Below are positions 10,171 to 62,144 of a stretch of 64,000 bases of DNA, piece by piece. The stretch covers positions 124,001 through 188,000 of the forward strand of contig NIVC01001509.1 in assembly GCA_002269645.1 (NCBI GenBank), in the 5' to 3' direction. The stretch is from Macrostomum lignano (taxonomy: Eukaryota). A model generated the notes under the pieces. It worked only from the letters and a program-made list of their open reading frames with translations. It made no database searches and was not told the DNA's origin. The position numbers and the translations under genes are program-made. Numbering within the stretch: the stretch's first letter is position 1; the number at the start of each line of letters is the position of its first letter.

Positions 10171-10544
10171 CCCCCCCCTGTGCATCTTCCTCTAGATTCT
10201 GATGCAGCTATTTATTCTATCGTATCAGTAGCAGATTTATGTACGCCTGCACTGTTGCCAGACTGATTATGAAGCTGCAATACTGTCTAGTAATTCTAGT
10301 ACTGCAGTACTTGTAACAATATAGTAACTTGCTGCTATATGCATATACATCCTAATCGAATATTAAGGTTCACCTGCTAAAGTCAAAAGCCAAGGCCTCC
10401 TAAGTTATTTATCTGGATTAGAAATAAATATCAACACTAAGAGGCCAGTTCTCTTTGGCCTTCAGCCAATTTTAAAATCTGTCTAAACTGCATTTCTAAA
10501 ATGCGGCTGTAGTGTGAACCGGCCTTTAGAGGCTGGCTACAGGC

Positions 10545-12985
10545 CTCGTCTCCCTCTACCTCCCCATCTCCCTTTATCTCCACCTTCCTCTACCTCCTTA
10601 CCTCTCTCCCTCATCTCCCTCTACCTCTCCATCTCACTCTACCTCCTTACCTCTCTCCCTCATCTCCCTCTACCTCTCCACCTCCCTCTACCTCCTTACC
10701 TCTCTCCCTCATCTCCCTCTACCTCTCCATCTCACTCTACCTCCTTACCTCTCTCCCTCATTTCCCTCTACCTCTCCACCTCCCTCTACCTCCTTACCTC
10801 TCTCCCTCATCTCCCTCTACCTCATCTCCCTCTACCTCTTCACCTCCCTCTAACTCCTTACCTCTCTCCCTCATCTCCCTCTACCTCTCCATCTCACTCT
10901 ACCTCCTTACCTCTCTCCCTCATCTCCATCTATCTCTCCATCTCACTCTACCTCCTTACCTCTCTCCCTCATCTCCCTCTACCTCTCCATCTCACTCTAC
11001 CTCCTTACGTCTCTCCCTCATCTCCCTCTACCTCTCCACCTCCCTCTACCTCCTTACCTCTCTCCCTCATCTCCCTCTACCTCTCCATCTCACTCTACCT
11101 CCTTACCTCTCTCCCTCATCTCCCTCTACCTCTCCACCTCCCTCTACCTCCTTACCTCTCTCCCTCATCTCCCTCTACCTCTCCACCTTCCTTTACCTCC
11201 TTACCTCTCTCCCTCATCTCCCTCTACCTCTCCACCTCCCTCTACCTCCTTACCTCTCTCCCTCATCTCCCTCTACCTCTCCACCTCACTCTACCTCCTT
11301 ACCTCTCTCCCTCATTTCCCTCTACCTCTCCACCTCCCTCTACCTCCTTACCTCTCTCCCTCATCTCCCTCTACCTCTTCACCTCCCTCTACCTCCTTAC
11401 CTCTCTCCCTCATCTCCCTCTACCTCTCCACCTCCCTCTACCTCCTTACCTCTCTCCCTCATCTCCCTCTACCTCTCCACCTCACTCTACCTCCTTACCT
11501 CTCTCCCTCATCTCCCTCTACCTCTCCACCTCCCTCTACCTCCTTACCTCTCTCCCTCATCTCCCTCTACCTCTCCACCTCCCTCTACCTCCTTACCTCT
11601 CTCCCTCATCTCCCTCTACCTCTCCATCTCACTCTACCTCCTTACCTCTCTCCCTCATCTCCCTCTACCTCTCCACCTCCCTCTACCTCCTTACCTCTCT
11701 CCCTCATCTCCCTCTACCTCATCTCCCTCTACCTCTTCACCTCCCTCTAACTCCTTACCTCTCTCCCTCATCTCCCTCTACCTCTCCATCTCACTCTACC
11801 TCCTTACCTCTCTCCCTCATCTCCATCTATCTCTCCATCTCACTCTACCTCCTTACCTCTCTCCCTCATCTCCCTCTACCTCTCCATCTCACTCTACCTC
11901 CTTACCTCTCTCCCTCATCTCCCTCTACCTCTCCACCTCACTCTACCTCCTTACCTCTCTCCCTCATCTCCCTCTACCTCTCCATCTCACTCTACCTCCT
12001 TACCTCTCTCCCTCATCTCCCTCTACCTCTCCACCTCCCTCTACCTCCTTACCTCTCTCCCTCATCTCCCTCTACCTCTCCATCTCACTCTACCTCCTTA
12101 TCTCTTTCCCTCATCTCCCTCTACCTCTCCACCTTCCTTTACCTCCTTACCTCTCTCCCTCATCTCCCTCTACCTCTCCACCTTCCTTTACCTCCTTACC
12201 TCTCTCCCCCATCTCCCTCTACCTCTCCACCTCCCTCTACCTCCTTACCTCTCTCCCTCATCTCCCTCTACCTCTCCACCTCCCTCTACCTCCTTACCTC
12301 TCTCCCTCATCTCCCTCTACCTCTCCACCTCACTCTACCTCCTTACCTCTCTCCCTCATCTCCCTCTACCTCTCCACCTCCCTCTACCTCCTTACCTCTC
12401 TCCCTCATCTCCCTCTACCTCTCCACCTCCCTCTACCTCCTTACCTCTCTCCCTCATCTCCCTCTACCTCTCCATCTCACTCTACCTCCTTACCTCTCTC
12501 CCTCATCTCCCTCTACCTCTTTACCTCCCTCTACCTCCTTACCTCTCTCCCTCATCTCCCTCTACCTCATCTCCCTCTACCTCTCCACCTCACTCTACCT
12601 CCTTACCTCTCTCCCTCATCTCCCTCTACCTCTCCACCTCCCTCTACCTCCTTACCTCTCTCCCTCATCTCCCTCTACCTCTCCACCTCCCTCTACCTCC
12701 TTACCTCTCTCCCTCATCTCCCTCTACCTCTCCATCTCACTCTACCTCCTTACCTCTCTCCCTCATCTCCCTCTACCTCTCCACCTCCCTCTACCTCCTT
12801 ACCTCTCTCCCTCATCTCCCTCTACCTCTCCACCTCCCTCTACCTCCTTACCTCTCTCCCTCATCTCCCTCTACCTCTCCATCTCACTCTACCTCTCCAC
12901 CTCCCTCTACCTCCTTACCTCTCTCCCTCATCTCCCTCTACCTCTCCATCTCCCTCTACCTCTCCACCTCACTCTACCTCCTCAT
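10545..12985. repeat. 49-bp pyrimidine-rich, essentially G-free minisatellite
   Basis: Unit CTACCTCCTTACCTCTCTCCCTCATCTCCCTCTACCTCTCCACCTCCCT, about 50 copies; source of the 876-aa artefact ORF. Confidence 0.97.
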
Positions 12986-17300: not shown

Positions 17301-20300
17301 GTCGAGCCGCAATCAGCCTACAGTAGTCTGAAAATGCAAGGCTTTGTCGAGCCGCAATCAGCCTACAGTAGTCTGAAAATGCAAGGCTTTGTCGAGCCGC
17401 AATCAGCCTACAGTAGTCTGAAAATGCAAGGCTTTGTCGAGCCGCAATCAGCCTACAGTAGTCTGAAAATGCAAGGCTTTGTCGAGCCGCAATCAGCCTA
17501 CAGTAGTCTGAAAATGCAAGGCTTTGTCGAGCCGCAATCAGCCTACAGTAGTCTGAAAATGCAAGGCTTTGTCGAGCCGCAATCAGCCTACAGTTGTCTG
17601 AAAATGTGGAGTTCAGTAAGGAGTTGGCTCTCCAGCTTCTGACTCTAGATCTCCTTGGTTGAGGACAAAGTTCCGGGAGAAAAGAAATCCCACTAGACAA
17701 CTACGGGGGGTTTCATTCCACCTGAGGTGTCCCGAAAAGCTCTCCGGTTCGCATAAGCCCCAGCCCAGGTGAAGCACTGCCAGTCCATTTCCCATGGCCG
17801 TTGTCATCTTCATTCGGCCTTGAAGAGATGGTCCCGGCTCTTCTGTCCGGTTTTCCTGCTTGACTGCGCTTGGCTAAAAGGGCGAATTCGTTCGGGCAGA
17901 ACTGACGCTCCTGAGTGGCAACTTGCACGCTTCCACTTGGTTTTAGTTACTGCTAATATTCTGTTAGACAGTAGCTATATTCTGTTAGACAGTAGCTATA
18001 TTCTGTTAGACAGTAGCTATATTCTGTTAGACAGTAGCTATATTCTGTTAGACAGTAGCTATATCCGGTTAGACAGTAGCTATATTCTGTTAGACAGTAG
18101 CTATATTCTGTTAGACAGTGGCTATATTCTGTTAGACATTAGCTATATTCTGTTAGACAGTAGCTATATTCTGTTAGACAGTAGCTATATTCTGTTAGAC
18201 AGTAGCTATATTCTGTTAGACAGTAGCTATATTCTGTTAGACAGTAGCTATATCCGGTTAGACAGTAGCTATATTCTGTTAGACAGTAGCTATATTCTGT
18301 TAGACAGTGGCTATATTCTGTTAGACATTAGCTATATTCTGTTAGACAGTAGCTATATTCTGTTAGACAGTAGCTATATTCTGTTAGACAGTAGCTATAT
18401 TCTGTTAGACAGTAGCTATATTCTGTTAGACAGTAGCTATATTCTGTTAGACAGTAGCTATTTTCTGTTAGACAGTAGCTATATTCTGTTAGACAGCAGC
18501 CATATTCTGTTAAACAGTAGCTATATCCTGTTAGACAGTGGCTATATTCTGTTAGACATTAGCTATATTCTGTTAGACAGTAGCTATATTCTGTTAGACA
18601 GTAGCTATATTCTGTTAGACAGTAGCTATATTCTGTTAGACAGTAGCTATATCCGGTTAGACAGTAGCTATATCCTGTTAGACAGTAGCTATATCCGGTT
18701 AGACAGTAGCTATATCCTGTTAGACAGTAGCTATATCCGGTTAGACAGTAGCTATATCCTGTTAGACAGTAGCTATATTCTGTTCGACAGTAGCTATTAT
18801 CTGTTAGACAGTAGCTATATTCTGTTAGACAGTAGCTATATTCTGCTAGACAGTAGCTATATTCTGTTCGACAGTAGCTATTATCTGTTAGACAGTAGCT
18901 ATATCCTGTTAGACAGTAGCTATATCCGGTTAGACAGTAGCTATATCCTGTTAGACAGTAGCTATATTCTGTGCGACAGTAGCTATTATTCTGTTAGACA
19001 GCAGCTATATTCTGTTAGACAGTAGCTATATTCTGTTAGACAGTAGCTATATCCGGTTAGACAGTAGCTATATTCTGTTAGACAGTAGCCATATTCTGTT
19101 AGACAGCAGCTATATTCTGTTAGACAGTAGCTATATTCTGTTAGACAGTAGCTATATCCGGTTAGACAGTAGCCATATCCTGTTAGACAGCAGCTATATT
19201 CTGTTAGACAGTAGCTATATTCTGTTAGACAGTAGCTATATTCTGCTAGACAGCAGCCATATCCTGTTAGACAGCAGCCATATTCTTTGACAGTCCCCAT
19301 GCACTGCAGTATCTGCACCGGCCCCAGCATACGCACAGAGGCTGACCGGCAATTCAAGCCAATTTAATATTTAATGCAACAATCCCAAATTGATGGGAGC
19401 GCATTCCTCTCTCTGTCCCACCCGTTCCCGTATCCCGCTGCAACCTTCAGCAAAGAAAATGCCGCGGGTGGGAATTAACGGGATCACAGGGCACCGTCCC
19501 CAACACCAATGCTTCCCAATATGAATTGCGGCGGGCCATCTGTCTGGCGGCTCAGCCAAGGAGCTCTAGCTAGAACGCTTGTCTGGAGCGTCCTTCTTCT
19601 ATTCTGGTACTTCAGCTGTCCATACTAGGAGTCCTTGGACAAGGGAAAGTATTAATGTATAATTCAAGTTCTTAGCTTCCATTAGGTAGATGAAAAAATA
19701 TTGTTCGACGGTCTAGCGATTGGTCAGTTTCCAATCCAGATAACTTTATTTAGAAGTCCTTGTTCTGCTGAGCATCCCTGACCGCCAGTTACCCCCCCTC
19801 TGCCCCAAATTTTGCTCAGTCAGTCATTCTCATCACGGCTGGGATCAAAGAGGGTAGAAATCTCCCCTAAACTCCCAAAACCTCATCAAGAATGAGCGGG
19901 AGAGCTCAACGGCTTGCGGGTTATCCTCTAAGCAGCAGAGGTTAGCACTGTTGTAAGAAGAAATCAGTGAGAACTTTATCAGTTTGAATTAATTCCCTCA
20001 TATATTCAAAGTGTTACGTTTTGGAGCAGGGGATTTTCTGGCTTCCTCATTCTGATGCTGTGTCTTCTGCATGCGGCAACCAGCTAGCGATGTTCGGCAA
20101 TAAATAATATATCAATAAAAATAGAAACTTTATTTTCCACCCACTGTAAAGCCATAAACATCAGGCAACACAGCGGAGAGCTGGTGGCGATAGAAGACAA
20201 GTGGGAGGCTGGGAGCGAGCAGCGCGAAAGTCTTCATTAGGCTCCTTCCCGCCCCCGCCTCCCTACCCTCCGCATGCGTTCGCCTGTTGCTTTTTCGTTT

Positions 20301-29941: not shown

Positions 29942-32356
29942 ATGCAGCCGTCCAGCCCAGGCAAGTCGCGCCAGTCGCGCCTGGACCTGCTGTGCCTGGC
30001 CGCTGAGGAGACAACAGCTCACGGACTCAGCCGCACAGTGGGCAACCGGCACCCTGTGGTTCGGGTGCTCTGGGGCCTGGCCTTCCTCTGCATGCTAGGC
30101 GTCTTTCTCAAGCAATTCGTGGACTCCTGCAACCGCCTCTACTCAAGCCGGTGTCAACCTCAATCGAGCCGAACACTGTGGATTTCCAGTTCCCGGATGT
30201 GCACATCTGCTCCGTGCCCATTGTGTCGGCCAGTTACGCCTCGCTGATGAGCCCGGCAGACCTGAATTTCACTGTCGAGCTCATGAAGCAGATTGAAAAC
30301 CGGCTGAAGGCCGCCAATCTCCCAGTGCTGTACCTCGGCGGTCAGCTGTTCACCGGCAGCCTGCCGTACAACTTTCTGAGCAGAAACTTCGGCACTCGCA
30401 AGGAGCAGTCGGTCATCGGGGCGCTGGTGATGCCAGTGAACACGAATCTGCAGCTCGATGTTGACATTATCGACCTGCGGCATCACAAGTACCTGAACTG
30501 CTTCACCATGCGGCTGAGGGATCCTTCACTGCACAGCCTGCTGAACAATGTACTGGGCTACCTGGATCTCAACCTGTACGCCGATGCCAGCTTCAACCAA
30601 GCGAGATTCTGCGCTACTTCAACAACATCATGGACGTCCGCGGACTAAACTTTGACGTCTACGAGGCCCTGATAGGCTCCGGGTTTCGCATATTTTTCAC
30701 TCCGCGGGGCTACTACCCAGACGATTACAGCCCGTCAGTGACTGTGAGCCCGGGATTCCAGCATCGGATCAGTCTGAGCATGCTCTACACAGAGTTGACT
30801 CCGGACAAGGGCCAGTGCGTTCGCGACAGTCCAGATGTTGTGTACCTGGACCAGTTCACCGGACAGCCCGTCACTTACCACTACGATCTGTCTTGTACGT
30901 GTGCAGAGTCACATTGGTGTCTCAAGTCACAATTTATTTATTTGGACTTTGCAATTTTGGCTTTACAGTTTTGGTACAGATTGGTCACTGTGGGATTCAG
31001 AGTTTGGTACGGATTGGACACTAGGATTCTGAGTTTGGTACGGATTGGTCACTGGGATTCAGAGTTTGGTACGGATTAGACACTAGGATTCTGAGTTTGG
31101 TACGGATTGGACACTGGTATTCTGAGTTTGGTACGGATTGGACACTGGTATTCTGAGTTTGGTACGGATTGGACACTGGTATTCAGAGTTTGGTACGGAT
31201 TGGACACTGGTATTCAGAGTTTGGTACGGATTGGACACTGGTATTCAGAGTTTGGTACGGATTGGACACTGGTATTCAGAGTTTGGTACGGATTGGACAC
31301 TAGGATTCAGAGTTTGGTACGGATTGGACACTAGGATTCAGAGTTTGGTACGGATTGGTCAATGGGATTCAGAGTTTGGTACGGATTGGTCACTGGGATT
31401 CAGAGTTTGGTACGGATTGGCACTAGGATTCAGAGTTTGGTACGGATTGGTCAATGGGATTCAGAGTTTGGTACGGATTGGTCACTGGGATTCAGAGTTT
31501 GGTACGGATTGGACACTGGTATTTAGAGTTTGGTACGGATTGGTCACTGATATTCACTTTAACTTTCGCTTTCACTCAGCTTGCTACGCCCAGTTTATGA
31601 ACGAGATGTTCAAGAATGAATTTGGCTGCTTCCTGCCCGGCTACTCGCCCATCCTGTACGAACACCGGGACCTGCGCTTGTGCAGCAACCTGGCCTACAT
31701 TGACTCCAACGCCACCGGTCAGTCATGGAGTGGAAAGCTGAATTTCCTCTACGGCTTCACCAACGGCACCTTCACGGAGCAGCTGGTTGGCAGCATGCAC
31801 AAGATGATGGAGCGCTGCCGGCAGAGGCAGTCCTGCCAGGAGGCCAAGTACGTGTCCAGCCTGAGCTCATTCGATTCCCGCTGAGTCAGGCCGTCAACAA
31901 TGAGCTGATCAACACTTTCCGTGCGCTGAACGGCCACCGAATCGCGAACAACTACTCCATCCCCGGCCGGATGTGGATGCAGCGCCTGTTTGAGTCTGGC
32001 GTCAATTCACAGCGTCCAGCGCCACTTCGCTTGAGTACGTGCAGGCGGTGGAGGAGAACATTGTCCGGGTGCAGATCCACGCGGGCGAGCTCACGTCCAC
32101 CTTGTACAGGCAGCAGATATCCTACCTGCCCAGCGACCTGTTAGCCGGAGTTGGCGGTCTCATGGGTCTCTACATGGGCTGCAGTGTGCTCACCCTGATG
32201 GAGCTTCTCGAACTGCTAGCCGTGCTCATCTACGGGCGTCGTCTTGTCGCCGAACCGTCAGCCGTGACCGATCAGAGTCAGCAGCAGTCGCAGCAGCAGC
32301 TCAGTGGGCAGTCGGGCAGTAAAAGCGACCGTAAGATTGAGCTGGTCACCTTTTAA
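29942..32356 (+). CDS. DEG/ENaC (amiloride-sensitive sodium channel family) subunit 1; exons 29942-30894, 31580-32356; four single-base -1 frameshifts (pseudogene or consensus errors); about 577 aa if repaired
   Basis: N-terminal TTAHGL + TM1; post-TM1 FQFPDVHIC; YLNCFT; GFRIFF; TVSPG; Cys-rich CYAQF..GCFLPG..CSN..C; TM2 DLLAGVGGLMGLYMGCSVLTLMELLE with GxS filter. Frame switches occur near 30145, 30599, 31868 and 32006. Intron GTACGT(30895)..TTCACTCAG(31579). Confidence 0.85.
30965..31550. repeat. 31-bp minisatellite (TTCAGAGTTTGGTACGGATTGGACACTGGTA) in the ENaC-1 intron
   Basis: About 19 copies. Confidence 0.95.
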
Positions 32357-35856: not shown

Positions 35857-38800
35857 ATGAATCTAACAGCCTTGACAACTGTCTGCATACTTTTTCTGAT
35901 AGCTGTGCATCACACAGGTATGTAGCTGAATCAGCATCAATACTTGTACATTAGTTGCAAGAATATTTATATCATATATTATGCCATAGACAAAACCAAT
36001 CCTGCACACCCGGAGAGATCTGTGCCATAGACACAACCAATCCTGCACACCCGGAGAGATCTGTGCCATAGACACAACCAATCCTGCACACCCGGAGAGA
36101 TCTGTGCCATAGACACAACCAATCCTGCACACCCGGAGAGATCTATGCCATAGACACAACCAATCCTGCACACCCGGAGAGATCTGTGCCATAGACACAA
36201 CCAATCCTGCACACCCGGAGAGATCTGTGCCATAGACACAACCAATCCTGCACACCCGGAGAGATCTATGCCATAGACACAACCAATCCTGCACACCCGG
36301 AGAGATCTGTGCCATAGACACAACCAATCCTGCACACCCGGAGAGATCTATGCCATAGACACAACCAATCCTGCACACCCGGAGAGATCTATGTCATAGA
36401 CACAACCAATCCTGCACACCCGGAGAGATCTGTGCCATAGACACAACCAATCCTGCACACCCGGAGAGATCTGTGCCATAGACACAACCAATCCTGCACA
36501 CTCGGAGAGATCTATGCCATAGACACAACCAATTCTGCACACTCGGAGAGATCTATGCCATAGACACAACCAATCCTGCACACCCGGAGAGATCTGTGCC
36601 ATAGACACAACCAATCCTGCACACCCGGAGAGATCTGTGCCATAGACACAACCAATCCTGCACACCCGGAGAGATCTGTGCCATAGACACAACCAATTCT
36701 GCACACCCGGAGAGATCTGTGCCATAGACACAACCAATCCTGCACACCCGGAGAGATCTTTGCCATAGACACAACCAATCCTGCACACCCGGAGAGATCT
36801 GTGCCATAGACACAACCAATCCTGCACACCCGGAGAGATATGTACCATAGACACAACCAATCCTGCACACCCGGAGAGATCTGTGCCATAGACACAACCA
36901 ATCCTGCACACCTGGAGAGATCTATGCCATAGACACAACCAATCCTGCACACCCGGAGAGATCTGTGCCATAGACACAACCAATCCTGCACACCCGGAGA
37001 GATCTGTGCCATAGACACAACCAATCCTGCACACCCGGAGAGATCTGTGCCATAGACACAATCAATCCTGCACACCTGGAGAGATCTATGCCATAGACAC
37101 AACCAATCCTGCACACCCGGAGAGATCTGTGCCATAGACACAACCAATCCTGCACACCCGGAGAGATCTATGCCATAGACACAACCAATCCTGCACACCC
37201 GGAGAGATCTATGCCATAGACACAACCAATCCTGCACACCCGGAGAGATCTGTGCCATAGACACAACCAATCCTGCACACCCGGAGAGATCTATGCCATA
37301 GACACAACCAATCCTGCACACCCGGAGAGATCTATGCCATAGACACAACCAATCCTGCACATCCGGAGAGATCTATGCCATAGACACAACCAATCCTGCA
37401 CACCCGGAGAGATCTGTGCCATAGACACAACCAATCCTGCACACCCGGAGAGATCTATGCCATAGACACAACCAATCCTGCACACCCGGAGAGATCTATG
37501 CCATAGACGCAACCAATCCTGCACACCCGGAGAGATCTGTGCCATAGACACAACCAATCCTGCACACCCGGAGAGATCTATGCCATAGACACAACCAATC
37601 CTGCACACCCGGAGAGATCTATGCCATAGACACAACCAATCCTGCACACCCGGAGAGATCTATGCCATAGACACAACCAATCCTGCACACCCGGAGAGAT
37701 CTATGCCATAGACACAACCAATTCTGCACACCCGGAGAGATCTGTGCCATAGACACAACCAATCGTGCACACCCGGAGAGATCTGTGCCATAGACACAAC
37801 CAATCCTGCACACCCGGAGAGATCTGTGCCATAGACACAACCAATCCTGCACACCCGGAGAGATCTGTGCCATAGACACAACCAATCCTGCACACCCGGA
37901 GAGATCTGTGCCATAGACACAACCAATCCTGCACACCCGGAGAGATCTGTGCCATAGACACAACCAATCCTGAACACAGAAAAAAACTTACATCTTCGGT
38001 TGCAAAATCTAATTCAGCAGTTTAAATTTCTGCCTCAACAGAACAGCTCACAGCTAATGGGACCATGACTGCTCCGCCGCCGACGACTGCCCATACGACT
38101 ACGACCGCCCCACCGCCAACGACATCGACAAATTCGACGACAGCGGCCAGCACGGCCAGCCCGGCCACAACTCGCACCTCAGCAGCCACAACCGCCCAGT
38201 CTACCAGTGCATCCACCACCAGTGCATCCACCACCAGCGCATCCACCACCAGTGCATCCACCACCAGTGCATCCACCACTGCCAAGCCCAGCCCGACAAC
38301 AACTACTTCTACTACTAGTACTACAACTACTACGTCTACGACTACAACTACAACTACCACGGCGGCCACAACTACAGCTAAGAAGAAGCCAAAGCGACTG
38401 TGCAAGTTTCCGTTCTGGCATCGGAACGAGTGGCAGCACGAGTGCATGCCATACGGCTCCAAGGGCGCGCACTGGTGCTCGCTGACTCGGAACTTCACTA
38501 GGGATGAGGAGTGGCGAGACTGCGCTAGTGAGCTGGGATTGAGAGCTGGGATTATTAGGATTGAGAACTGGGATTATTAGGATTGGGAACTGGGATTATT
38601 AGGATTGGGAACTGGGATTACTAGGATTGGGAACTGGGATTTCCGGGATTGGGAACTGGATGACTGGGATTGGGAAGTGGGATTACTGGGATTGGGAAGT
38701 GGGATTACTGGGATAACTGGGATTGGGAAGTGGGATTACTGGGATTGGGAAGTGGGATTACTGGGATTACTGGGATTGGGAAGTGGGATTACTGAGATTG

Positions 38801-40471
38801 GGAAGTGGGATTACTGAGATTGGGAAGGGGGATTACTGGGATTGGGAAGTGGGATTACTGGGATTACTGGGATTGGGAAGTGGGATTACTGAGATTGGGA
38901 AGTGGGATTACTGAGATTGGGAAGGGGGATTACTGGGATTGGGAAGTGGGATTACTGGGATTGGGAAGTGGGATGACTGGGATTGGGAGTGGGATTACTG
39001 GGATTACTGGGATTGGGAAGTGGGATTACTGGGATTACTGAGATTGGGAAGTGGGATTACTGGGATTGGGAAGTGGAATTACTGGGATTGGGAAGTGGGA
39101 TTACTGGGATTGGGAAGTGGGATTACTGGGATTGGGAAGTGGGATTATTATGATTAGGAATGTGACTGAGAAGTTTGATTTCTGAAGTCCGGAGCTATTA
39201 AAGCGCCATCAGAAATATTTCAAACCTGCAGGATACGACCTGATGCGGTACAAGTGCTCTGTGCCATTCCACCACGCGGGCAAGACGCACACCGAGTGCC
39301 AGCCGCTGCAGCTGGAGCCACTGGCCCGGCGAATCTTCTGGTGCTCCCTGGTGCCCAGCATCTCCAGCGTCACCTGGGCGAACCTCGGCACCGACTGGAC
39401 CTTCTGCGAGGCGGCCAACGCCACCGGCCCCGACTACCTGAAATCCGTGGCCGGCTATCGTAGCCAGGCCGACGCCCAGATTCACGGTAACCATGGCAAC
39501 AAGAATGACACAACTATGGCGAAACTTATTGAGCACGCTGTGCAGCAGGCGGGCGACTCAAAATCGGCGAATTCCGATGGCGACTCCACCGGAAGTGGCG
39601 GAGCCGCAGCCGCCACGCCGAGCTCCGTGCTGGGCGTCGCTCTGGGCATCGTTGGTCTGATCTTGGCCGCTGTGGCCGTGGCGGCCGCCTTTGCCGTGCA
39701 CAGGAGGTAATTCAGGGGGGTGCGAAACTACCTCTGATGTGATAAGCGCCTTGAGATTTTCTAACTCTTCACTTCAGTGATTAGAGGTCCGCATTTCATG
39801 CTTCACCATTCACAATTCACGATTCACGTTTCACGCTTTACCATTCACAATTCACGAATCACGATTCACGAATCAAGATTCACGAATCAAGATTCCCGAT
39901 TCACGATTCATAATTCACGGTTCACGATTCATGATTCACGATTCACGCTTTACCATTCGCGATTCACGATTCACGCTTCATGATTTATTATTCACAATTC
40001 ACGCTTTATTATTCGCGATTCACGATTCACGCTTCATGATTTGTGACTCACAATTCCCGCTTTACTATTCGCGATTCACGATTCACGCTTTATAATTCAC
40101 GACTCACGATTCATGGTTCACGATTCATGATTCACGATTCACGCTTTACCATTCGCGATTCGTGATTCGTGCTTTAAGATTCACGATTCATAATTCACAA
40201 CTCAAGATTCTCGATTCACGCTTCGTATTCTTAAATTATTGCACGATCTCAGTTCGCCACTTCACACGCTTTTTAAACTACTGTCGAGCTTCATAGTAGT
40301 CTGAAAGGGTTTTTAATTGAAGAATCAAGCTGGGTAAGAATAATTGCTATTAAACGAACAATCCACCGGGCCCATTCCAGAAATCAGTACAAGCGGATCG
40401 ATCCGCTGCTCTCGTCTGAGCAGGGAGCCGACAAAAGCAGCTACGGTGGAATGCAGGCCTATCACGACTGA
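35857..40471 (+). CDS. Type I membrane protein, 370 aa: signal peptide, Thr/Ser mucin stalk, two fibronectin type II-like domains, TM, short tail; exons 35857-35917, 38042-38527, 39232-39706, 40381-40471
   Basis: Signal peptide MNLTALTTVCILFLIAVHHT; about 110 aa of T/S/A; FN2-like CKFPFWHRNEWQHEC..HWCSLTRNFTRDEEWRDC and CSVPFHHAGKTHTEC..FWCSL..WTFC; TM VLGVALGIVGLILAAVAVAAAFAV; tail HRRNQYKRIDPLLSSEQGADKSSYGGMQAYHD*. Splice phases 1/1/2 are consistent; 1113 nt in total. Confidence 0.8.
35985..37975. repeat. 41-bp minisatellite (GCCATAGACACAACCAATCCTGCACACCCGGAGAGATCTGT)
   Basis: About 48 copies filling intron 1 of the FN2 gene. Confidence 0.97.
38535..39155. repeat. G-rich 22-bp/9-bp composite repeat (CTGGGATTGGGAAGTGGGATTA)
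   Basis: Fills intron 2 of the FN2 gene; three GGG runs per unit. Confidence 0.93.
39805..40225. repeat. 7-bp repeat (ATTCACG)n, diverged
   Basis: About 60 copies in intron 3 of the FN2 gene. Confidence 0.9.
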
Positions 40472-41090: not shown

Positions 41091-41876
41091 CTGGGCTCTG
41101 AGTGTCTGTGATGACGAATGTCACTCAATTGTGATCAGGCGATATTTCGGTTGCTTGCATAATTTCAATGTACTTCAGTCAAGTTATAAGAAACTTTTAT
41201 GTATTACTCTACTAATAGTAGAAAGGAAATACGTTACCAATAAAATCATTAAAATGTTTATTACATCTGCTGCCCTGGAAAAATTAGCAGGTCTTAATCA
41301 CTTCACTACATAAGGGTTGCAACTTTCTTAGTCATTTCTTATAGTTCATCTGCACTCGTCTCTGTTTACTGTTTTCTCTCCCTCTCTGTCCAGTTCAATC
41401 TTGTCATTCTTATCTCTCCCATTGCTGCCTTCTGATTGGCTGTTCAATCTCGCCTCTTTCCTTAGTCGCGCACTTCACTCCACCCCTCCTTTTCCTATTT
41501 GCACTCAACCCCCCAGTTAATGTCTTTTAAATGTACCTGTTTAAGTTCATCGCCCTACTTACTGTTTGGTTTCAACTCTAATCGAAAAGTTTTCCTAAAT
41601 AAAATTTCATTACACAGAGCTGTCAGTTGAAGCAAAAACTTTCGGGAAGCAGCTCGAAAACTCGATGAAAGTGTAGCGTTTACTAAAGGTTATTTTGTTT
41701 GTGGAGTTAAATTGCCGCGATATTTCTGAACCATAGGACTGCATCGTGACAGCCAACATCCGGTTACCGGAAAGACCAAACGAAAAATGATTCCAGCGAT
41801 CAACCTCTCTATTCTGACAGTATAAAATCAACAGTATTCACAATTGCAGCCAGTTCCCGGACAAACATCTCCAATT

Positions 41877-42911
41877 ATGCTGCTAGTAGTTCAACTGTTT
41901 CTGCTGTTGCTGCTGAATCTGCAGGTGGAAGCAGCAGACTCGTCCAACAACCAAGAGCGATGCGAACCAATCGCAGTTCCAATGTGTCAGGGGCTTGGCT
42001 ACAATTTTACTACCAAGACGCATAGCCTGATGGGCAGTGACCAAGAAGAGATTGGCCTTAATCTGCACTCATTCAGGCCGCTGGTCCAGGTTGGATGCTC
42101 AAAGGACCTGAAATTCTTTCTCTGCTCTGCCGCACTTCCGATGTGCGCACCGAGTTACGCGCGGCCAATTGGTCCGTGCCGTCATCTGTGTAAGAGAGCT
42201 CGGCGAGGCTGCCGACCCTTGATGCGGCAGTACGGATTCGACTGGCCAAGTGTGCTCAGGTGCAGTCGCTTCCCGGATGTTGGAGGAAACAGACCGTGTT
42301 TGGGGGACCTGAATAGCGGTGGCGGTAGCTTCGGAAGCGGAAGCGCCGACCGAGATGGGAGCGGAAGCGCCGACCGAGATGGGAGCGGAAGCGCCGACCG
42401 AGATGGGAGCGGAAGCGCCGACCGAGATGGGAGCGGAAGCGCCGACCGAGATGGGAGCGGAAGCGCCGACCGAGATGGGAGCGGAAGCGCCGACCGAGAT
42501 GGAAGCGGAAGCGGCGACCGAGATGGAAGCGGAAGCGGCGACCGAGACGGAAGCGGAAGCGGCGACCGAGACGGAAGCGGAAGCGCCGACCGAGATGGGA
42601 GCGGAAGCGCCGACCGAGATGGAAGCGGAAGCGGCGACCGAGATGGGAGCGGAAGCGTCGACCGAGACGGAAGCGGAAGCGCCGACCGAGATGGGAGCGG
42701 AAGCGGCGACCGAGACGGAAGCGGAAGCGCCGACCGAGATGGGAGCGGAAGCGCCGACCGAGATGGGAGCGGAAGCGCCGACCGAGATGGGAGCGGAAGC
42801 GTCGACCGAGACGGAAGCGGAAGCGCCGACCGAGATGGGAGCGGAAGCGCCGACCGAGACGGAAGCGGAAGAGCCAACGACGGCGATAGAAGCGAAACCT
42901 GCGAATGTTAA
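41877..42911 (+). CDS. Secreted Frizzled cysteine-rich-domain protein with ~22 GSGSADRD tandem repeats (no 7TM, no netrin domain)
   Basis: Signal peptide MLLVVQLFLLLLLNLQVEA; complete 10-Cys CRD (CEPIAVPMCQGLGYNFT..GCSKDLKFFLCSAALPMC..GPCRHLCKRARRGC..YGFDWPSVLRCSRFP..PC); in-frame 24-bp repeat; ends ETCEC*. TATAAAA at 41821. Confidence 0.82.
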   Translation: MLLVVQLFLLLLLNLQVEAADSSNNQERCEPIAVPMCQGLGYNFTTKTHSLMGSDQEEIGLNLHSFRPLVQVGCSKDLKFFLCSAALPMCAPSYARPIGPCRHLCKRARRGCRPLMRQYGFDWPSVLRCSRFPDVGGNRPCLGDLNSGGGSFGSGSADRDGSGSADRDGSGSADRDGSGSADRDGSGSADRDGSGSADRDGSGSADRDGSGSGDRDGSGSGDRDGSGSGDRDGSGSADRDGSGSADRDGSGSGDRDGSGSVDRDGSGSADRDGSGSGDRDGSGSADRDGSGSADRDGSGSADRDGSGSVDRDGSGSADRDGSGSADRDGSGRANDGDRSETCEC

Positions 42912-43285
42912 ATAGGCAGCAGAGGCGGCAGCGGCATTGACGATTGACTCAACTATTCTTCTTCCGGTTGACGAAACTTTATGATGAATTTTACTCATAT
43001 TAAGATGTATGAAATATTTAATAATACAGACAACTACTTTAGGCTTCTGCAAGTGATCTCATTCTATGTGTAGTTTGGGTTTGACTTTGTGTTGTGTCAC
43101 TATGTTTCCTCAGTCAAGCGGCGCTTAGGGCTAGCGCTTTTTCATGCTTTTTTAACTCCTGCTGATAATCAAAAACACACACCGGCATTGTACGTCTACT
43201 TGCACCCTGGCACAATAGCAATTATTGCATAAAACATAGATATAAATATTTTCCTGGACATATTTGCGTTCTCCGGGATTTTATT

Positions 43286-43471
43286 CTGACTGACTGACTG
43301 ACTGACTGACTGACTGACTGACTGACTGACTGACTGACTGACTGACTGACTGACTGACTGACTGACTGACTGACTGACTGACTGACTGACTGACTGACTG
43401 ACTGACTGACTGACTGACTGACTGACTGACTGACTGACTGACTGACTGACTGACTGACTGACTGACTGACT
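43286..43471. repeat. (GACT)n microsatellite
   Basis: About 46 perfect copies. Confidence 0.98.
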
Positions 43472-53935: not shown

Positions 53936-54749
53936 ATTTTAAGGCTTTCTACTGCTTCATTAGGAATTGAAAAGTTCATTTCTCGAATATCAAATAATAT
54001 GAAGATGGAGCTCCCCATTCCAGCATGAGGGAGAAAAAAATCGATATTGGAAAGTTCCAATATAATAATCATATTTGCCAGCAAATACCCTATAAAAATT
54101 CTGGCATTTTGGTTATTTTTCTCCAATCCAAATCAACTCCGGTCGCATCAATCACGCAGCTGCGGCTGTCTGTCCTTGAGAACTTTTTCCCAGAATCTTT
54201 TGGGCAAGAGGGGCACGAAAATCAGGACGCTGGTGTCTGCCGGCCTTCCCTGCTGCCCTCCAAGCTCCATACTTTTATCATGCTGCTCAGCCAGACTGAC
54301 CCTGGATTTGTCTGGCGGAGGCCCAGCCTGAGCAATTTGTCACCTTCACTCTGAAGTATATGCAGTTATCCAGCTGTGCCCATTTGCCCCCAATGGGAGT
54401 TTCGCATCAGAATTATGTTCGAGTCATTTCGAGCTTCACTTGCTGCGTTTCCATTCCCAGCACCTCATTCAGAGAATTCCTTGTCAAACTTTTTAAATAC
54501 GCATTGCATTTCGTGCTTGAGTCCTCTGATTTTCGGTTTGAAGTCGGCTAATTTAAAAAAATGAACCAAACATCAATCAGAAATCCGTTGGTTAGATAAC
54601 ATGAAAATTTGTGTTCCCCCCCAAACTGGGACACTGCAGCTGGCTTTGAACTGCTGGACTGTGAAATTAGCAATTCACTTGCTAAATTATTCGTTTCCAA
54701 GTTGCCAGTTAATCACAAGTTGCGAGCTGACCCAGTCTGCTTTAGTAAG

Positions 54750-56125
54750 CCTATGTCACCAATCCTACTGTCACTAATCCTGCTGTCACTAATCCTGCTG
54801 TCACTAATCCTGCTGTCACTAATCCTACTGTCACCAATCCTACTGTCACTAATCCTACTGTCACCAATCCTACTGTCACCAATCCTACTGTCACCAATCC
54901 TACTGTCACCAACCCTACTGTCACGAATCCTACTGTCACCAATCCTACTGTCACCAATCCTACTGTCACTAATCCTGCTGTCACTAATCCTACTGTCACC
55001 AATCCTACTGTCACCAATCTTACTGTCACCAATCCTACTGTCACCAATCCTACTGTCACCAACCCTACTGTCACCAATCCTACTGTCACCAATCCTACTG
55101 TCACTAATCTTGCTGGCACTAATCCCATTGTCACCAATCCTACTGTCACCAATCCTACTGTCACCAATCCTACTGTCACCAATCCTACTGTCACCAACCC
55201 TACTGTCACGAATCCTACTGTCACCAATCCTACTGTCACCAATCCTACTGTCACTAATCCTGCTGTCACTAATCCTACTGTCACCAATCCTACTGTCACC
55301 AATCTTACTGTCACCAATCCTACTGTCACCAATCCTACTGTCACCAACCCTACTGTCACCAATCCTACTGTCACCAATCCTACTGTCACTAATCTTGCTG
55401 GCACTAATCCCATTGTCACCAATCCTACTGTCACCAATCCTACTGTAACTAATCCTACTGTCACTAATCCTACTGTCACCAATCCTACTGTCACCAATCC
55501 TACTGTCACTAATCCTGCTGTCACTAATCCTGCTGTCACTAATCCTGCTGTCACTAATCCTACTGTCACCAATCCTACTGTCACCAATCTTACTGTCACC
55601 AATCCTACTGTCACCAATCTTGCTGGCACTAATCCCATTGTCACCAATCCTACTGTCACCAATCCTACTGTAACTAATCCTACTGTCACTAATCCTACTG
55701 TCACCAATCCTACTGTCACCAATCCTACTGTCACCAATCCTACTGTAACTAATCCTACTGTCACCAATCCTACTGTCACCAATCCTACTGTCACCAATCC
55801 TACTGTCACCAATCCTACTGTCACTAATCCTACTGTCACCAATCCTACTGTCACCAATCCTACTGTCACCAATCCTACTGTCACCAATCCTACTGTCACC
55901 AATCCTACTGTCACCAATCCTACTGTCACCAATCCTACTGTCACCAATCCTACTGTCACCAATCCTACTGTCACTAATCCTACTGTCACCAATCTTTCTG
56001 TCACTAATCCTGCTGGCACCAAATCCCATTGTCACTAATCCTACTGTTACTAATCCTAATGTCACTAATCCTGCTGGCACTAATCCCATTGTCACCAATC
56101 CTACTGTCACTAATCCTACTGTCAC
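54750..56125. repeat. 15-bp minisatellite (CTGTCACCAATCCTA)
   Basis: About 90 copies; a variant block recurs at ~55110, 55395 and 55620. Source of the 279/423/479-aa artefact ORFs. Confidence 0.97.
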
Positions 56126-56619
56126 CATTTTCGTTGTGATGAATCCTGTCATGAACCAATCTAATTGTCATTAGATATACGCACTATTAATCTGTAAAAC
56201 CACCGACGTCTAAGCATTTAAAGAGCACCAATATAAATTTGACAGAAAAGCAACGGGTTAACATGTAGCTTCCAAGTATATTTTAAATTATGGAGAGGTG
56301 TCAGAGCTTAACTCTCTTTGACAGGTATCGTGGCGCAAGATAGCCATCTTTTATATTCATAAGGTTGCTAGCGACTGCGAAGTTTCCTTAGAAATGGGGA
56401 AAAGTCAGGTGAGCATGGACCTCCGTTATATAAAAGTTTAGTAGTACTTAATCTTAAGTAGTCTGTGCATTTCCTTAATATTTTAGTATGTTAAATTACA
56501 ACTTTTAGGGTACACTGAAATTTTACAAAAATATCAATTAAACTGATAAAAAGTATTTTATTATGTTACAATGAGATAGCTATATACGAGCGTGTGTGTC
56601 CCGCTTGAACTTCATTTAT

Positions 56620-56767: not shown

Positions 56768-59448
56768 TCAAGTGTCAGCCCTTTCTGCATTCTCAGCCTT
56801 CTTCTTCAGCCGCCTGACGGCCAGCAGACGGACGAACAGCTCGACAAATTCGAATGTGCTGATGATGGACACGCCCAGCCAGAGGCCCAGAATGCCGCCA
56901 ATGTCCGAGGCCAGGTTCCTGGCTAGGTAGGCCGGGGTCTCCAGCACGCGGTTGCCACGCGTGGAATGGCTGTATATATTTAGTCTGGCGAACGATTTGA
57001 TGGCCTCCAGCGACTGGTTCTCCAGGCTGCGCCGAATCTCAGCCAGGGTGACGAGGTCGTCACCGCGCTGTCTGGCCAGCTCCGTTGTGGCGTCGACACG
57101 ACGCAGCAGCGCCTCCTGGGTCTCCTCCGCGTCGCTGGGCCAGCGGTTCTGGGTCACGCGCATCTCGTACCTGGTGTTGCGGCACCGCAGGGGGCAGCTG
57201 TGCCCCGAGCCGGACGTGCGCTTATGAATCTCTTCAACAGCGTCGTCGTGACATCGGCGACGATTTTGGGCGGCTCTGTGCGCCTCAGCGTCGGTGCTGT
57301 CGTCTTCCGATGGCGCTACGTTGGCGCCACCTTTAGCGCTGTCGGCGCCGGCTTGCAGCAGGGTGTCCCGGTCGATGTTGTGGCAGTAGTGGACCACTTT
57401 GCCGCTGCCGGAGTCGATGCCAACGGTGCCAAAGGTCGCCGGCAGGGGCAACGTCTCGGACAAGCAGGTACAGTTTTTGTGCAGGAAATCCTGGTACGTT
57501 TTCACCAGACAGTCGCGAAGAGTGTATCTGAGAATTTGTTTGTTTAATGATGTGTATAAAAGATAGTCTTCTACTTAGCAATTAAGATCACCTGACGAAG
57601 AGAACGAACTCTGTAACCGGTTCTGGTTTATTGAAGTTTGAATCTCACGTTTGGACACACGTAGGTACAATTATAAAACCCCACAATGGTTCCCTGATTG
57701 GGAGTTCATTTATTCGAATGTGAATTTCTGACACCTTGTGTCACTGCTCTGTAGACCTGACAATGTGCTTTTTAACTTGTTGTTTCTTTGGTTTCGTTGT
57801 ACGTAGAATTTCCGGAACTTTCAAGCATGACTTGCGAGGGGTTCAATGAACTTGTAGCTGTCAACGTTGGCAAACTTTTGAAGAGGAACACGCAATGACA
57901 GAGAGTGGTCGCAGTTATTTCCATCGAAGCCTGACGCTCCGAAAAGCGGAATAAAAATTCGCCTTGAGGGCTGCTCAAAATTGATTCGCCCCGACCAGAC
58001 TAAGTAATGAATATTTTCTCCCCAGCACATTGCTCTCCTAAAAGCGGAATTGGAATTTCTGGATTTCAAATCCGATAGGAAATTTTATTTCCACCCTTCG
58101 TGCAGCCGGTCTGTTGCCATCGGATCATTAGGATATTGGGATTGGATGTGGATGAGACGCGTTGGAATTGATTCTGTTAGTTGTTTGATGGGACAGTCGA
58201 CTCAAGAAGCTTACAAGTTAAGCTAGCTTTATCAGTCTGAGCTATAAGAGAAAACAAATCGTACTCGTACTCAACATCTTCAACAATTTTTTTAGACTAG
58301 AATCTAGATAATTGTTTAGATAATTGTAGAAAATTATGGCTTAAGAAATCCGCGATTGCAGACTTCAGAAATTCTCCAATTGAAACTGCAATCTGATCAA
58401 CTGGCGGAGTTTCACTTGGAGAATTAGTTGAAATTCACCTGTACTCTCGTGTGTGGCCGTGTCGATCAAGGAATTGGATTGGCTGCAGCTGCAGCTCCTC
58501 CTCGGTCTTGCAGTTGCGCAGCACTGTCTCTTCCGTGTAGCCCAGCTGCACGTAGGTGCTGGTTGTTTCCTGGACGTAGAATCCCTCAAGCAGGTCGGGT
58601 CGCGTCCCCTGTTCGTGGATGACGACGCGGAATCCCCGGGTGTAGCTCAGCGACTCCTCTTCCGTGAGAAGGTTCATCGTGTCCCCGACGTACAGGATCA
58701 CGCGCAATCCTCCGTCGCGCTCTCCGCCAACGAGGAGATGCCGCTCAGTGGGCGAGAAGGTAAAGCAGCTGAAGAAGTTCGGGTCAACGTATGCCGCGAA
58801 GCTTTCATAGCTGCAGTCATTCCCGGCAAAGTCGCAGTGAATGAACATCTCCTGTCGCTGCTTGGTCACATTAATTTCCTGTAGGTATGTTTTAAGCGAG
58901 TTCAACAGATCCGCGTTGATATCTCCGTCATCGAGTTGGTTTGCCGGATCCCAGACTCGCCTGATGCTAGCCACCAGGTCGGACATGGTCATGTTGTCCA
59001 GACTGGGCACCTTTGGGTTTGTCATGAACCGCAATCGGCTGAAGTGACTAGTGGCGCAAATAGTCACATCTGGAAACACGAACGGTGTGCTGTAAACGCT
59101 TGTCTCCGTGTTTACTGGGCCCTCGATAAACCTGCTGAACAGGGAGACCAGGTGAGCGCTAAATCCAGAAAAGGCCGTGACGATAATGCAAATCCAGGCA
59201 AGCTTGTGCCACGTACTGCCGCTCTGAAACACCTTGTGAAATCCGTGCGCCGAGGTGCACGTGCAAAACTCCTTTATCAGCTTCTCCGAGGGACTATCAC
59301 CGAACTTTTCTCTGCGAAGCTGGCGAACCATCTTCATCAGACGGTTAGGACGAAAGTTGCCGGCGCGCTCATTTTCCAGTCCAACCCCCAGGCGGGTCAG
59401 GGGCACCGTCACCTCCTCTGGGACCTCGCCCTCTATTGCTGGCTCCAT
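56768..59448 (-). CDS. DEG/ENaC channel subunit 2, intact, 589 aa; exons 59448-58439, 57527-56768
   Basis: CTSAHGF + TM1 (LAWICIIVTAFSGFSAHL); FVFPDVTIC; FIHCDFAGNDC; NFFSCFTF; GLRVILYV; GFRVVIHEQG; CPLRC..Y..RWP; TM2 ASDIGGILGLWLGVSIISTFEFVEL. Phase-2 intron; 1770 nt in total. Confidence 0.93.
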
Positions 59449-62144
59449 TCTGCAATAGAATTCCAACTATTTGGGGTTGTATCCAGAACAGATCGATAGC
59501 TAGATGACAGGCAGTAAATATACGACTGTCGAAATGTCGCGTTTTGACAAGATTTTTTTCACAGTGTCTTTATCCCCATGCCAGGCTCTTCGCCCTAACT
59601 GGCTAGATCTGCCCCCGGCGGTCTGACCCAATAGCAACTGGGCGAGCTCGCGTGCTGTCTGACTCCTTGAGCCACAGATGCGCGAGTTCGAGCTGAGGTC
59701 TGGTCACGTCGTGTGTACTTCAGTTGATAGATTTGAATTGCTATTCATACTCGTACATTTATACATGCTTGGCTTTGAATAATGTTATACATGTACATGT
59801 AGTTAACATTTTATTTATGACTGCACATAGTTTCTCTTGGGATAGGTTGAAGATAGTCAGGCATGCATATAGATTACGGTTAGCTGTCATACGCTCGTAA
59901 AATAAGTAAAAACTTTAAAATTAATGCTTTAAATGGCTTTAGCAATTTCTATAGTTGGTAAACTCCAACAGACTGTCTGAAGCATCGCGATAACCAGACT
60001 TGACTCGTAGTAGCCTCTACGAGCGTGAGGCTGTATGCGTCCCCGACAGAATCAGCCGCGTGTTAAGTGCATGCATTATTTCAGTGCTTGTGTATATTTA
60101 ACGTCATTGATATTGTACGTCATTCTGCTCTTTTAGAATCGTAAATTAAAAATTTACAAAGCGCTAATTTTGCATTTTACTTCAACTTTGACTTTGGTTT
60201 AACCTTGTAGCTATAGTCGATACAGTTGAATCCTGCAGCTATAATCCCCTGAATGTGCCTGAAAATTAGCTACATATACTATAACCTTTGTACTGTGCCG
60301 GCCCGGGTATGTTTCGTTGCATTTCTAAGAAGCAACGAAGGCTATTATGGCAAGTCAGAGATAATCTGTTGTGATGGTTCGTCAATATTAATTAGCATTC
60401 GCATTCGTTTCACAGCCTCTAACATTGTTCTTTTAATGATGTTAGTGGCGAGCTGGTGTTGGTGCTGTATGCTCTTGAATTTATTTTCTCAAGTAATCTC
60501 GACTATTATTGCTACCATGATCAGCGCATTTGCTGCCTATCTGTTGAAATTCGTGCAGCTTCCGATGTGGCTACATAGTACACAAATTTAAGACAAGTAT
60601 AATTCTCAACCTTTTCTGATCGCTAACACATTATCAGTTGTACTAGATGGTCGATGGATCACACAATTGACTTTTTAAAAGGCGTTTACACTATAAAGGC
60701 TCTATAACATACACAAATGCAGACTACATGTACCACACAATATTATTTTAAATTGTTTCAAGTCAAATCACAGTTTTATTTTAAATACTTGCAAAGCGAT
60801 CAACTATTTTTAATCTTCCAGTAACCAAGAGCAAAGCATATTGGACTGGGTTAGGGTTATAAGACTGACTTAATGGTCCGATGTAGTTTTGACTGTTAAC
60901 ATAATATATGATTCTATTTTAGACTTATTCTTTCTAATTACAGTTAGTCCTTCTTCCATAGTGGAGATCAGGCTAAGTAAACACCTGATTGAAAAGCAAA
61001 AAAAACATAATTTCATGGGAATGTACGCCAAACTTCTATACTTTGTTATACTTTTAACATTGCAACGGTAAACGTATTGAATTAAAATACGCCAAACGAT
61101 ACATTAAATATATATACCAAATTTATGACCGGATTTTCGGTTCCCCATTCAGTTCCACGAAACTAAATCAACAAAAAATCAAATGCACACTACAGCAAAT
61201 GCAAGGAAAAGCTTTCTAAAATTAAACTAAAAGCATTTTTGCAATATAACATCTGAGTAGACTTTACACAAAAAAATATATTTTCAATTGAACATCTGTG
61301 AGCTTCATGGCATACCCCGAATGCTGAAATGGAGAGATTTCTTCGTGCTTTTTTATCTGTTGTGGAGACGCATCGTTCGCCACAGCGGCAAAAAACACCT
61401 GGGCTTGTTTGGCAACGCTATGGCAACCTCGACATCTTTTCTTCGTCTGTTGAAAGCACAGAGAAGTGAATTCAAGCGTTGTCGGCATAATGGAAGACCG
61501 AGATGCTGATTGTGTCTGCTGACGTCACAGCGGACCTAAAACACGCCACGGTGCAGACGCACGCTGCCAGCAGTGGTTCATCACACCAGCGGTCTGGTGC
61601 TCCATGTGGAGGAGAACCTTTCATATGAGGGGGCCAGGCCCGAACCCATTGATCAATCCTACGTGTTCTCTATACACTAATCTTTGCAATCTGAACCGTA
61701 TGTCATCACAGCCTTAAAAGGATCCCCTGATAAAAATCCTTCAGTAATGATCCTGGAGTTCCCGATTTGTGCCCAAGCAGAGTCCCATTATTCGGCTGCA
61801 TGCTGCTCCCTGCTAGCTCAAACCCTTGATACCCATCCCAGGCGGGGCTCTGGCACCAGGTCACACAGAGTGGTGACAGCCGTGGGTCATGCAATAACCC
61901 GATTACCAAATTTTCACCTTAAATTAGCTATCGATGGGGCACATGTGGGTCCTTACCCCTCAGGTCTCTATAATAACACCACCAAAAAGCTATCAATAAT
62001 GGGCGGGACAACCTGAAGGCGATCTGTCGGTCATAGCCTGGTCAATAGACGGCTGGCAGCCATCCCTATAGTCATACGATCTGATCCTTCCTCCATGAAA
62101 AGACGGTTCACTGGGGCGATTACATACATGTAAATTATCATATC

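Follow-up and report, generated by a model that had tools for sequence, protein, structure and literature searches.

A 64,000-nucleotide stretch of the genome of the flatworm Macrostomum lignano (contig NIVC01001509.1, positions 124,001 to 188,000; hereafter the window) contains, at 41877–42911 on the plus strand, one open exon of 344 codons that runs from an ATG at 41877 to a TAA at 42909–42911. We conclude that this is a real, expressed and uncharacterized gene. The reading that we favor by a narrow balance of the evidence is that this single-exon gene encodes a soluble secreted protein, in which a cysteine-rich domain (CRD) of the Frizzled-5/8 (Fz5/8) type is joined to a disordered acidic Ser/Gly tail, and that the protein would act as an extracellular Wnt regulator. 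An earlier note on this DNA had described a signal peptide, a 10-cysteine Frizzled CRD, about 22 repeat units and a terminal CEC* at 41877–42911, and all of these are present there.

The CRD extends from C29 to C141 (41961–42299, plus strand) and was recognized by Pfam, by sequence comparison with the PDB, and by Foldseek. Its ten cysteines are a hallmark of Frizzled receptors. The Pfam family Fz (PF01392) matches residues 29–134 with E=1.4e-29, and no other family matches the 344-residue protein at E≤1. When all solved structures were searched, the best relatives were the CRDs of FZD8 and FZD5 (E=2.5e-40, 141 bits, ∼50% identity, ungapped over 103 residues), followed by FZD7 (126 bits), FZD4 (∼119), FZD10, FZD3, sFRP3 (84), FZD6, and sizzled (57). 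An AlphaFold2 model built with 26 relatives has predicted local distance difference test (pLDDT) values mostly near 90 over the CRD, and Foldseek searches with this model returned the FZD8 and FZD5 CRDs at target-normalized TM scores of 0.83–0.89. The sequon N43-F-T has an aligned counterpart in mouse Fz8, the N49 sequon. The scores, which place the CRD lineage by search and not by a tree, support the earlier proposal of an Fz5/8 origin and do not point to the lineage of the secreted Frizzled-related proteins (sFRPs).

Residues 1–19 (MLLVVQLFLLLLLNLQVEA; 41877–41933, plus strand) constitute a predicted signal peptide with cleavage after VEA, which would leave a mature protein beginning with ADSS. 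This is the sole strongly hydrophobic segment of the protein: hydropathy over 19 residues peaks at residue 1, with a value of 2.07, and elsewhere does not exceed 1.1. The putative cleavage site has Val at –3 and Ala at –1, and AlphaFold2 models residues 2–20 as a helix. The N-terminus is shaped like a cleavable signal peptide, and the protein may enter the secretory pathway.

Several searches suggest that the product is a soluble secretory-type protein, not a receptor. In tblastn comparisons of 18 full-length or partial Frizzleds taken from an exhaustive CRD search (four of which were checked to carry the seven-transmembrane (7TM) family PF01534) with the window and two sister loci, L001 (NIVC01002684.1, Mlig010918.g1) and L002 (NIVC01004677.1, g2, at a contig end), the CRD alone was matched and no 7TM was found. 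A hidden Markov model of the CxCxC[RK]xP motif, the linker and the first transmembrane segment (TM1), made from ten relatives, had no match near the gene in six-frame translations. Coding sequence for a 7TM region, linker or TM1 was absent from the 21 kb downstream and 42 kb upstream of the gene and from 10 kb downstream in L001, and a continuation of the transcript into downstream 7TM exons, which the earlier note had named as a possible objection, thus finds no counterpart in the window or the sister loci. Pfam at E≤1 detected neither a netrin (NTR) module nor a glypican domain, and hydropathy revealed no C-terminal hydrophobic segment that could serve as a membrane anchor or a glycosylphosphatidylinositol (GPI) signal. 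The absence of 7TM and netrin modules had been claimed before and is borne out by these results.

The locus is represented in GenBank as gene BOX15_Mlig012237g1 (Mlig012237.g1; PAA67090.1, 308 residues, 5′ partial), a single coding exon at 41865–42911 on the plus strand; the existing labels are 'hypothetical protein' and FZ domain-containing protein. PAA67090.1 (P0151 in our protein set) is the third member of a cluster that holds two M. lignano proteins matched by the CRD query. Its contig stretch of 21 kb (L003) is identical to window positions 31865–52911, with the gene at 10001–11047 of the stretch. The Mlig_3_7 annotation was built only from RNA-seq-derived transcripts, with StringTie/TACO and de novo assembly as inputs, boundaries set by trans-splicing and poly(A) reads, and open reading frames (ORFs) called by TransDecoder (PMC5730564). 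Because the annotation is solely transcript-derived, the existence of the model implies that the locus is transcribed. From 41865 onward P0151 matches the genomic ORF apart from unit number: it has 17 repeat units, compared with 22 in the window, and the same end (GSGRANDGDRSETCEC). Its pattern of variable residues (AAAAAGGGAAGAAAVAA) differs from the window's 22-letter pattern. Collapse of the repeat, or reads that come from another copy, would account for the shortfall of 120 nt (two units plus three). Since P0151 keeps 17 units followed by SETCEC*, the repeat and the stop at 42911 belong to the mRNA model, as the earlier note had anticipated. A TATAAAA box at 41821–41827 (plus strand, read directly from the sequence), 50 nt 5′ of the ATG and 38 nt 5′ of the first coding base of the model at 41865, is identical in all three genomic copies and may be a promoter element.

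C-terminal to the CRD, a Ser/Gly-rich junction, LGDLNSGGGSF (42300–42332, plus strand), leads into a coding minisatellite of 22 units of 24 nt, each encoding GSGS[A/G/V]DRD (42333–42860, plus strand). The junction is the probable seed of the array, with 42318–42341 lying in frame and identical to the unit at 13 of 24 positions. Tandem Repeats Finder (TRF) delimits the array at 42336–42875, with period 24, 22.5 copies, 94% matches and a score of 919. Degenerate units, the C-terminus GSGRANDGDRSETCEC and the TAA then follow (42861–42911, plus strand): the 23rd unit (42861–42884) is identical to the unit at 17/24 positions and is succeeded by DRSETCEC*, and the final 24 nt (42888–42911, RSETCEC*) are identical at 14/24, a level reached by 0.06% of random 24-mers from the window. 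Decayed Ser/Gly-like units continue past the stop as IGSRGGSGIDD* in the 3′ untranslated region (42912–42950, plus strand), where several in-frame offsets reach 12–14/24. The 24-nt unit has no other occurrence within the window. Residues 145–344 have pLDDT values below 50 and are predicted to be disordered, and the tail carries a net charge of –24. The C-terminal CXC was also considered as a Rab-type prenylation motif, which is irrelevant to a luminal or secreted protein.

The array is arranged head to tail, in frame, with a period divisible by three and a copy number that differs between copies, as in coding variable-number tandem repeats (VNTRs). Some of what had been said of it requires correction. 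It is not 'perfect' but 94% regular by TRF, and it is not the only array of the window inside coding sequence, since an ORF in which Pfam detects an fn2 domain contains a 15-bp array at 38203–38279. The 24-bp unit stands as described; its freedom from stop codons has no value as evidence, given that the array leaves at least four of the six reading frames open. A period divisible by three is itself a one-in-three event. The variable residue is Ala in 15 of the 22 in-frame units, Gly in five and Val in two. Variation is confined to three of the 24 nucleotide positions, namely two synonymous third positions (GGA/GGG and GAT/GAC) and the second position of the Ala/Gly/Val codon, a pattern that mildly favors constraint in the CRD frame, although unit variants are spread by unequal exchange and hence are not independent events.

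Comparison of the genomic copies demonstrates that the array changes in length, as had been suggested from the window alone. L001 and L002 are collinear with the window over many kb, at 92–98% identity that is lower in tandem arrays and 98–99% around the CRD, as expected from the large duplicated fraction reported for the DV1 genome (PMC5730564). The array comprises 15 units in L001, 17 in the transcript model, 22 in the window and at least 22 in L002, and the Ala/Gly/Val patterns of L001 and L002 differ from that of the window. These differences indicate that array length and content turn over quickly, most probably by unequal exchange or slippage. The tail of L001 equals the GSGRANDGDRSETCEC region of the window save for R/S at one position. 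The GenBank models of the two sister copies (L001, 10001–10762; L002, 10001–10441) are distorted by indels: Mlig010918.g1 starts at an internal Met and lacks the signal peptide and the first cysteine, and the g2 model translates frame-shifted ends. Contig consensus errors and decaying copies would each account for these distortions.

The case for Wnt binding comes from residues of the lipid groove. In the mouse Fz8 structure 4F0A, the lipid channel is lined, or the lipid fixed in place, by Q71, F72, P74, I78, M122, Y125, F127, W129 and P130 (PMC6873803). Their equivalents in an ungapped alignment are S65, F66, P68, V72, M116, Y119, F121, W123 and P124; seven of the nine are identical, I78 to V is conservative, and Q71 to S is a real change. 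Among 26 relatives, 47 columns are at least 85% conserved, and 39 of these are kept, as are all 10 cysteines. Apart from self matches, a search of 1.84 billion cluster representatives, which may hide closer relatives, gave as the nearest protein a wasp frizzled-5-like protein with 54% identity. The exon thus did not split off recently from a parent of closely similar sequence, and an intact CRD that has no close parent gene argues for long-term constraint. Since a fragment long free of constraint would be expected to have lost cysteines or gained stops, we read the CRD as functional and, with moderate confidence, as probably binding lipid or Wnt; the conserved groove residues are what suggests Wnt as the ligand.

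The tail is compatible with the rules for glycosaminoglycan (GAG) attachment by human xylosyltransferase XT1. This enzyme strictly needs Gly or Ala after the acceptor Ser, is otherwise 'surprisingly unspecific', and prefers acidic surroundings (PMC5992326). Of 48 tail serines, 44 precede Gly or Ala, as the human rule, which may not be the flatworm's, demands. The resulting G-S-G and G-S-A cores have Asp at –2, –4, +4 and +6, so that both the Gly or Ala at +1 and the acidic context of proteoglycan acceptor serines are found here. Initiation of heparan sulfate by EXTL3 is favored where Ser-Gly pairs stand in tandem and acidic residues follow C-terminally (PMC10570366), and planarian flatworms have homologs of perlecan, agrin and glypican (PMC6453901). 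Mucin-type O-glycosylation, phosphorylation or a bare acidic spacer are possible alternatives for the tail.

In the mechanism that we envisage, the CRD would bind the lipid-modified thumb of Wnt outside the cell, as do sFRPs or a soluble Fz8 CRD, and binding would alter the amount of Wnt that reaches receptors. The tail would form an extended polyanionic stalk that is probably O-glycosylated, with xylose-primed GAG chains as the leading specific candidate for the modification. A nested and stronger version of this explanation, which we entertain tentatively, is a full proteoglycan in which many of the ∼44 permissive serines bear xylose-primed chains of heparan or chondroitin sulfate, so that repeat number would set the length of the brush. 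The Ser-Gly cores, which satisfy the XT1 rule, their suitability for EXTL3, the predicted disorder that would make the tail accessible, and the presence of heparan sulfate proteoglycan cores in flatworms speak for it. On the other side, the enzyme rules are those of human XT1 and not of a flatworm enzyme, and GAG sites follow no predictive consensus; moreover, in peptide scans human XT1 was less active on acceptors with a basic residue at any position (PMC13038410), so the Arg present in every unit, at –3 or at +3/+5 of the acceptor Ser, counts against xylosylation and is the first of several observations that weigh against our interpretation. Still more specific, and rather unlikely in our estimation, is a lineage-specific Wnt carrier or trap on a heavily GAG-substituted stalk whose chain number is set by the hypermutable coding minisatellite. 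The idea that the exon belongs to a Frizzled receptor, either as its first exon or as a short isoform with 7TM exons outside the window or reached by alternative splicing, is largely refuted and highly improbable. The CRD is of the Fz5/8 type, and the GT at 42325 and the AG at 42916–42917, a splice raised in the earlier note, could in principle excise the array, but such a splice would add just GSRGGSGIDD before a TGA, the transcript-derived models retain the array and end at CEC, the searches described above revealed no 7TM, linker or TM1 in the flanking sequence, and the reported mean intron of M. lignano is 1.1–1.4 kb (PMC5730564).

The remaining points against a functional secreted Wnt regulator are mostly those that would be expected of a transcribed relic, that is, a functionless truncated Fz5/8 duplicate which is decaying and in whose former linker a minisatellite expanded neutrally. 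As assembled, two of the three copies are frameshifted. In L001 a 1-nt deletion interrupts the signal-peptide CTG run, so that the gene model begins only at Met36; in L002 five small deletions within coding sequence outside the repeat put most of the CRD out of frame. In the non-repeat coding sequence the window and L001 differ by five substitutions, every one of them nonsynonymous (M116L, V135A, P140L, N146D and S154R), compared with three substitutions in ∼570 nt upstream; the three copies are 98–99% identical outside the array and so offer too few substitutions for a ratio of nonsynonymous to synonymous rates. Eight near-invariant CRD positions are changed (T48, H49, G53, I59, N62, S65, A86 and H103), among them the equivalents of Fz8 Q71 in the lipid channel, P54/N55 and Y92. 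No orthologue was found in other species, word-indexed CRD and full-length searches yielding M. lignano copies only, in databases from which other Macrostomum genomes and transcriptomes may be missing. Finally, 38% of the window is tandem repeat, so that neutral in-frame expansion is not unlikely a priori, and decayed units run through the stop codon. We nevertheless consider a relic unlikely, if by no means negligible. Its 10 cysteines, 39 of 47 conserved columns and seven of nine lipid residues are intact at 54% identity to the nearest relative, and an old pseudogene should have decayed; the window copy retains its signal peptide, ATG and TATA box; a transcript-derived model exists; and two of the three variable array positions are synonymous in the CRD frame. 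The frameshifts of L002 lie in an indel-rich contig end, with 11 single-base gaps in the last 2.3 kb and none in the preceding 4.2 kb, a clustering that suggests consensus or assembly error rather than decay, with real pseudogenization also possible. The same eight changed positions would suit a CRD repurposed for a non-Wnt ligand such as a lipid, a sterol or a matrix partner, with the tail as a spacer or as a carrier of mucin-type O-glycans or of phospho-acidic groups. CRDs of other families do bind other ligands; the CRD of Smoothened binds sterols and FZD4 binds Norrin. We judge this explanation improbable, since seven of the nine lipid-channel residues are as in Fz8, and a calcium-binding reading of the tail that might have gone with it fails: an EF-hand-like site in DRDGSGSADRDG, judged by eye, departs from PROSITE PS00018 at positions 8 and 12, the latter being the essential acidic position.

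For the favored secreted Fz5/8-type protein, the simplest history is that a gene of the Fz5/8 type lost everything after the linker and that the minisatellite grew, most probably, from a Ser/Gly-rich linker seed. The linkers of invertebrate Fz5/8 proteins that follow the CRD are rich in Ser, Gly and Thr (e.g., EKEGSGSTKP and SSGTGSGRGRT) and are followed by CxCxC[RK]xP. The earlier note had taken the terminal CEC for a relic of this region. The existence of the cysteine motif in invertebrate Fz5/8 proteins agrees with this, but the unit-like character of the last 24 nt (14/24), the decayed units past the stop and the lack of any other linker or TM1 relic do not; CEC may be either the start of CxCxC or a decayed repeat unit, the chance probabilities of the two being comparable.

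The architecture, which had not been recognized from known families, has no counterpart among the other proteins of the databases searched. When the full-length protein was searched against 5.8 billion clusters, 8000 candidates were scored, and the sole match was its own cluster. An exhaustive search with the CRD gave 2711 relatives, and in the best 150 of these four or more acidic Ser-Gly motifs occur otherwise only in two very large proteins (3573 and 6305 residues). In the accessible portion of a 2026 survey of flatworm Wnt components, which covered M. cliftonense and M. hystrix and not M. lignano, there is no such protein and no occurrence of 'CRD' or 'truncated' (bioRxiv 10.64898/2026.07.29.741434). 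The literature does not mention Mlig010918; the name Mlig012237 was not searched. The top-scoring CRD relatives (e.g., P0003 and P0004) include uncharacterized proteins made of many tandem Frizzled CRDs, with 13 matched stretches in the 1834-residue Penaeus chinensis protein XP_047484369.1 and nine in proteins of Montipora corals. A two-CRD protein, P0040, has in common with the window protein an FPD-GGNR-C motif at the end of the CRD.

Secreted Frizzled-CRD proteins are already known, and it is the combination of a CRD with a Ser-Gly repeat tail that appears to be a new form. Like the sFRPs, which are thought to bind Wnts extracellularly, the window protein has a signal peptide and an N-terminal Frizzled-type CRD and would be secreted; it differs in lacking an NTR module, in a CRD closer to FZD8/5, and in a C-terminal half that is a minisatellite-encoded Ser/Gly tail. 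For flatworms, sFRP1/2/5 is the one sFRP family that has been reported (bioRxiv 10.64898/2026.07.29.741434). With Frizzled-5/8 it shares a CRD that is 50–54% identical, the 10 cysteines and seven of nine lipid residues, and where the invertebrate receptors proceed through a linker rich in Ser, Gly and Thr to CxCxC it ends in CEC, without the 7TM domain (PF01534), the intracellular tail with KTxxxW, or any linker or TM1 relic in the window. The long 'frizzled' isoform of collagen XVIII likewise places a Frizzled CRD on a core that bears heparan sulfate at Ser-Gly (PMC4859157), a modification for which the present tail is only a candidate; its collagenous, TSP-1 and endostatin domains are absent here, and it has only three GAG sites. 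Glypicans combine a cysteine-rich ectodomain resembling the Frizzled CRD with C-terminal Ser-Gly GAG sites and modulate Wnt (PMC4859157), but they are GPI-anchored and have few GAG sites, whereas the window protein has neither a GPI-type C-terminus nor a glypican domain and has ∼44 candidate serines. Serglycin, syndecan clusters and the coding VNTRs of mucins resemble the tail, either in Ser-Gly pairs that are arranged in tandem and flanked by acidic residues or in an in-frame minisatellite of variable copy number; none of them has a Frizzled CRD, and any modification of the tail here is putative. Functionally, the nearest systems would be sFRPs and soluble Fz8 CRD decoys and, if the tail is GAG-modified, glypicans and the frizzled isoform of collagen XVIII.

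If the protein were a Wnt carrier on a GAG-bearing stalk, the range or retention of a morphogen could differ among alleles and subgenome copies of a regenerating flatworm, and a part in patterning might be expected. A product that both binds Wnt and bears GAG would unite a lipid-binding trap and a proteoglycan in one compact natural fusion, and it would exemplify a coding minisatellite that alters a signaling modulator. The possibility that the tail arose neutrally, as a by-product of a genome rich in minisatellites, is a real one, and a drifting relic would be merely another sign of that richness. M. lignano is amenable to RNA interference, in situ hybridization and transgenesis, and the idea is directly testable.

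The surroundings of the gene are rich in repeats. The window holds ∼44 distinct tandem arrays with periods of 4–147 bp, many of them 0.5–2.4 kb long, which together make up 38% of the 64 kb; the genome-wide figure for the assembly is 15% (PMC5730564). Three long ORFs, 6007–6753 (minus strand), 17769–19025 (plus) and 54713–56152 (minus), consist largely of in-frame arrays with periods of 21, 21 and 15, respectively. A perfect (CTGA)46 microsatellite at 43286–43471 lies 375 nt 3′ of the stop codon, and in L001 this interval is ∼950 nt longer.

The upstream neighbor (gene span 35857–40471, with parts at 38065–38580 and 39243–39710 on the plus strand) has the appearance of a mucin-like membrane protein. 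Its Thr/Ser-rich run contains the in-frame 15-bp array at 38203–38279 (TSAST ×5), the second coding tandem array of the window, and is followed by a fibronectin type II domain (PF00040, E=6.5e-12); the protein also has a second, weak match to fn2 and, at the C-terminal end, a transmembrane segment. At 1049–1675 (plus strand), an ORF matches the C-terminal OB domain of proteasomal ATPases (PF16450, E=1.3e-12) and probably represents one exon of a gene for a regulatory subunit of the 26S proteasome. Two exons on the minus strand, 56768–57505 (E=5.8e-22) and 58435–59466 (E=1.1e-34), belong to a gene for a DEG/ENaC (amiloride-sensitive sodium) channel (PF00858), and a weak ASC-like fragment (E=0.0028) lies at 30630–31079 on the plus strand.

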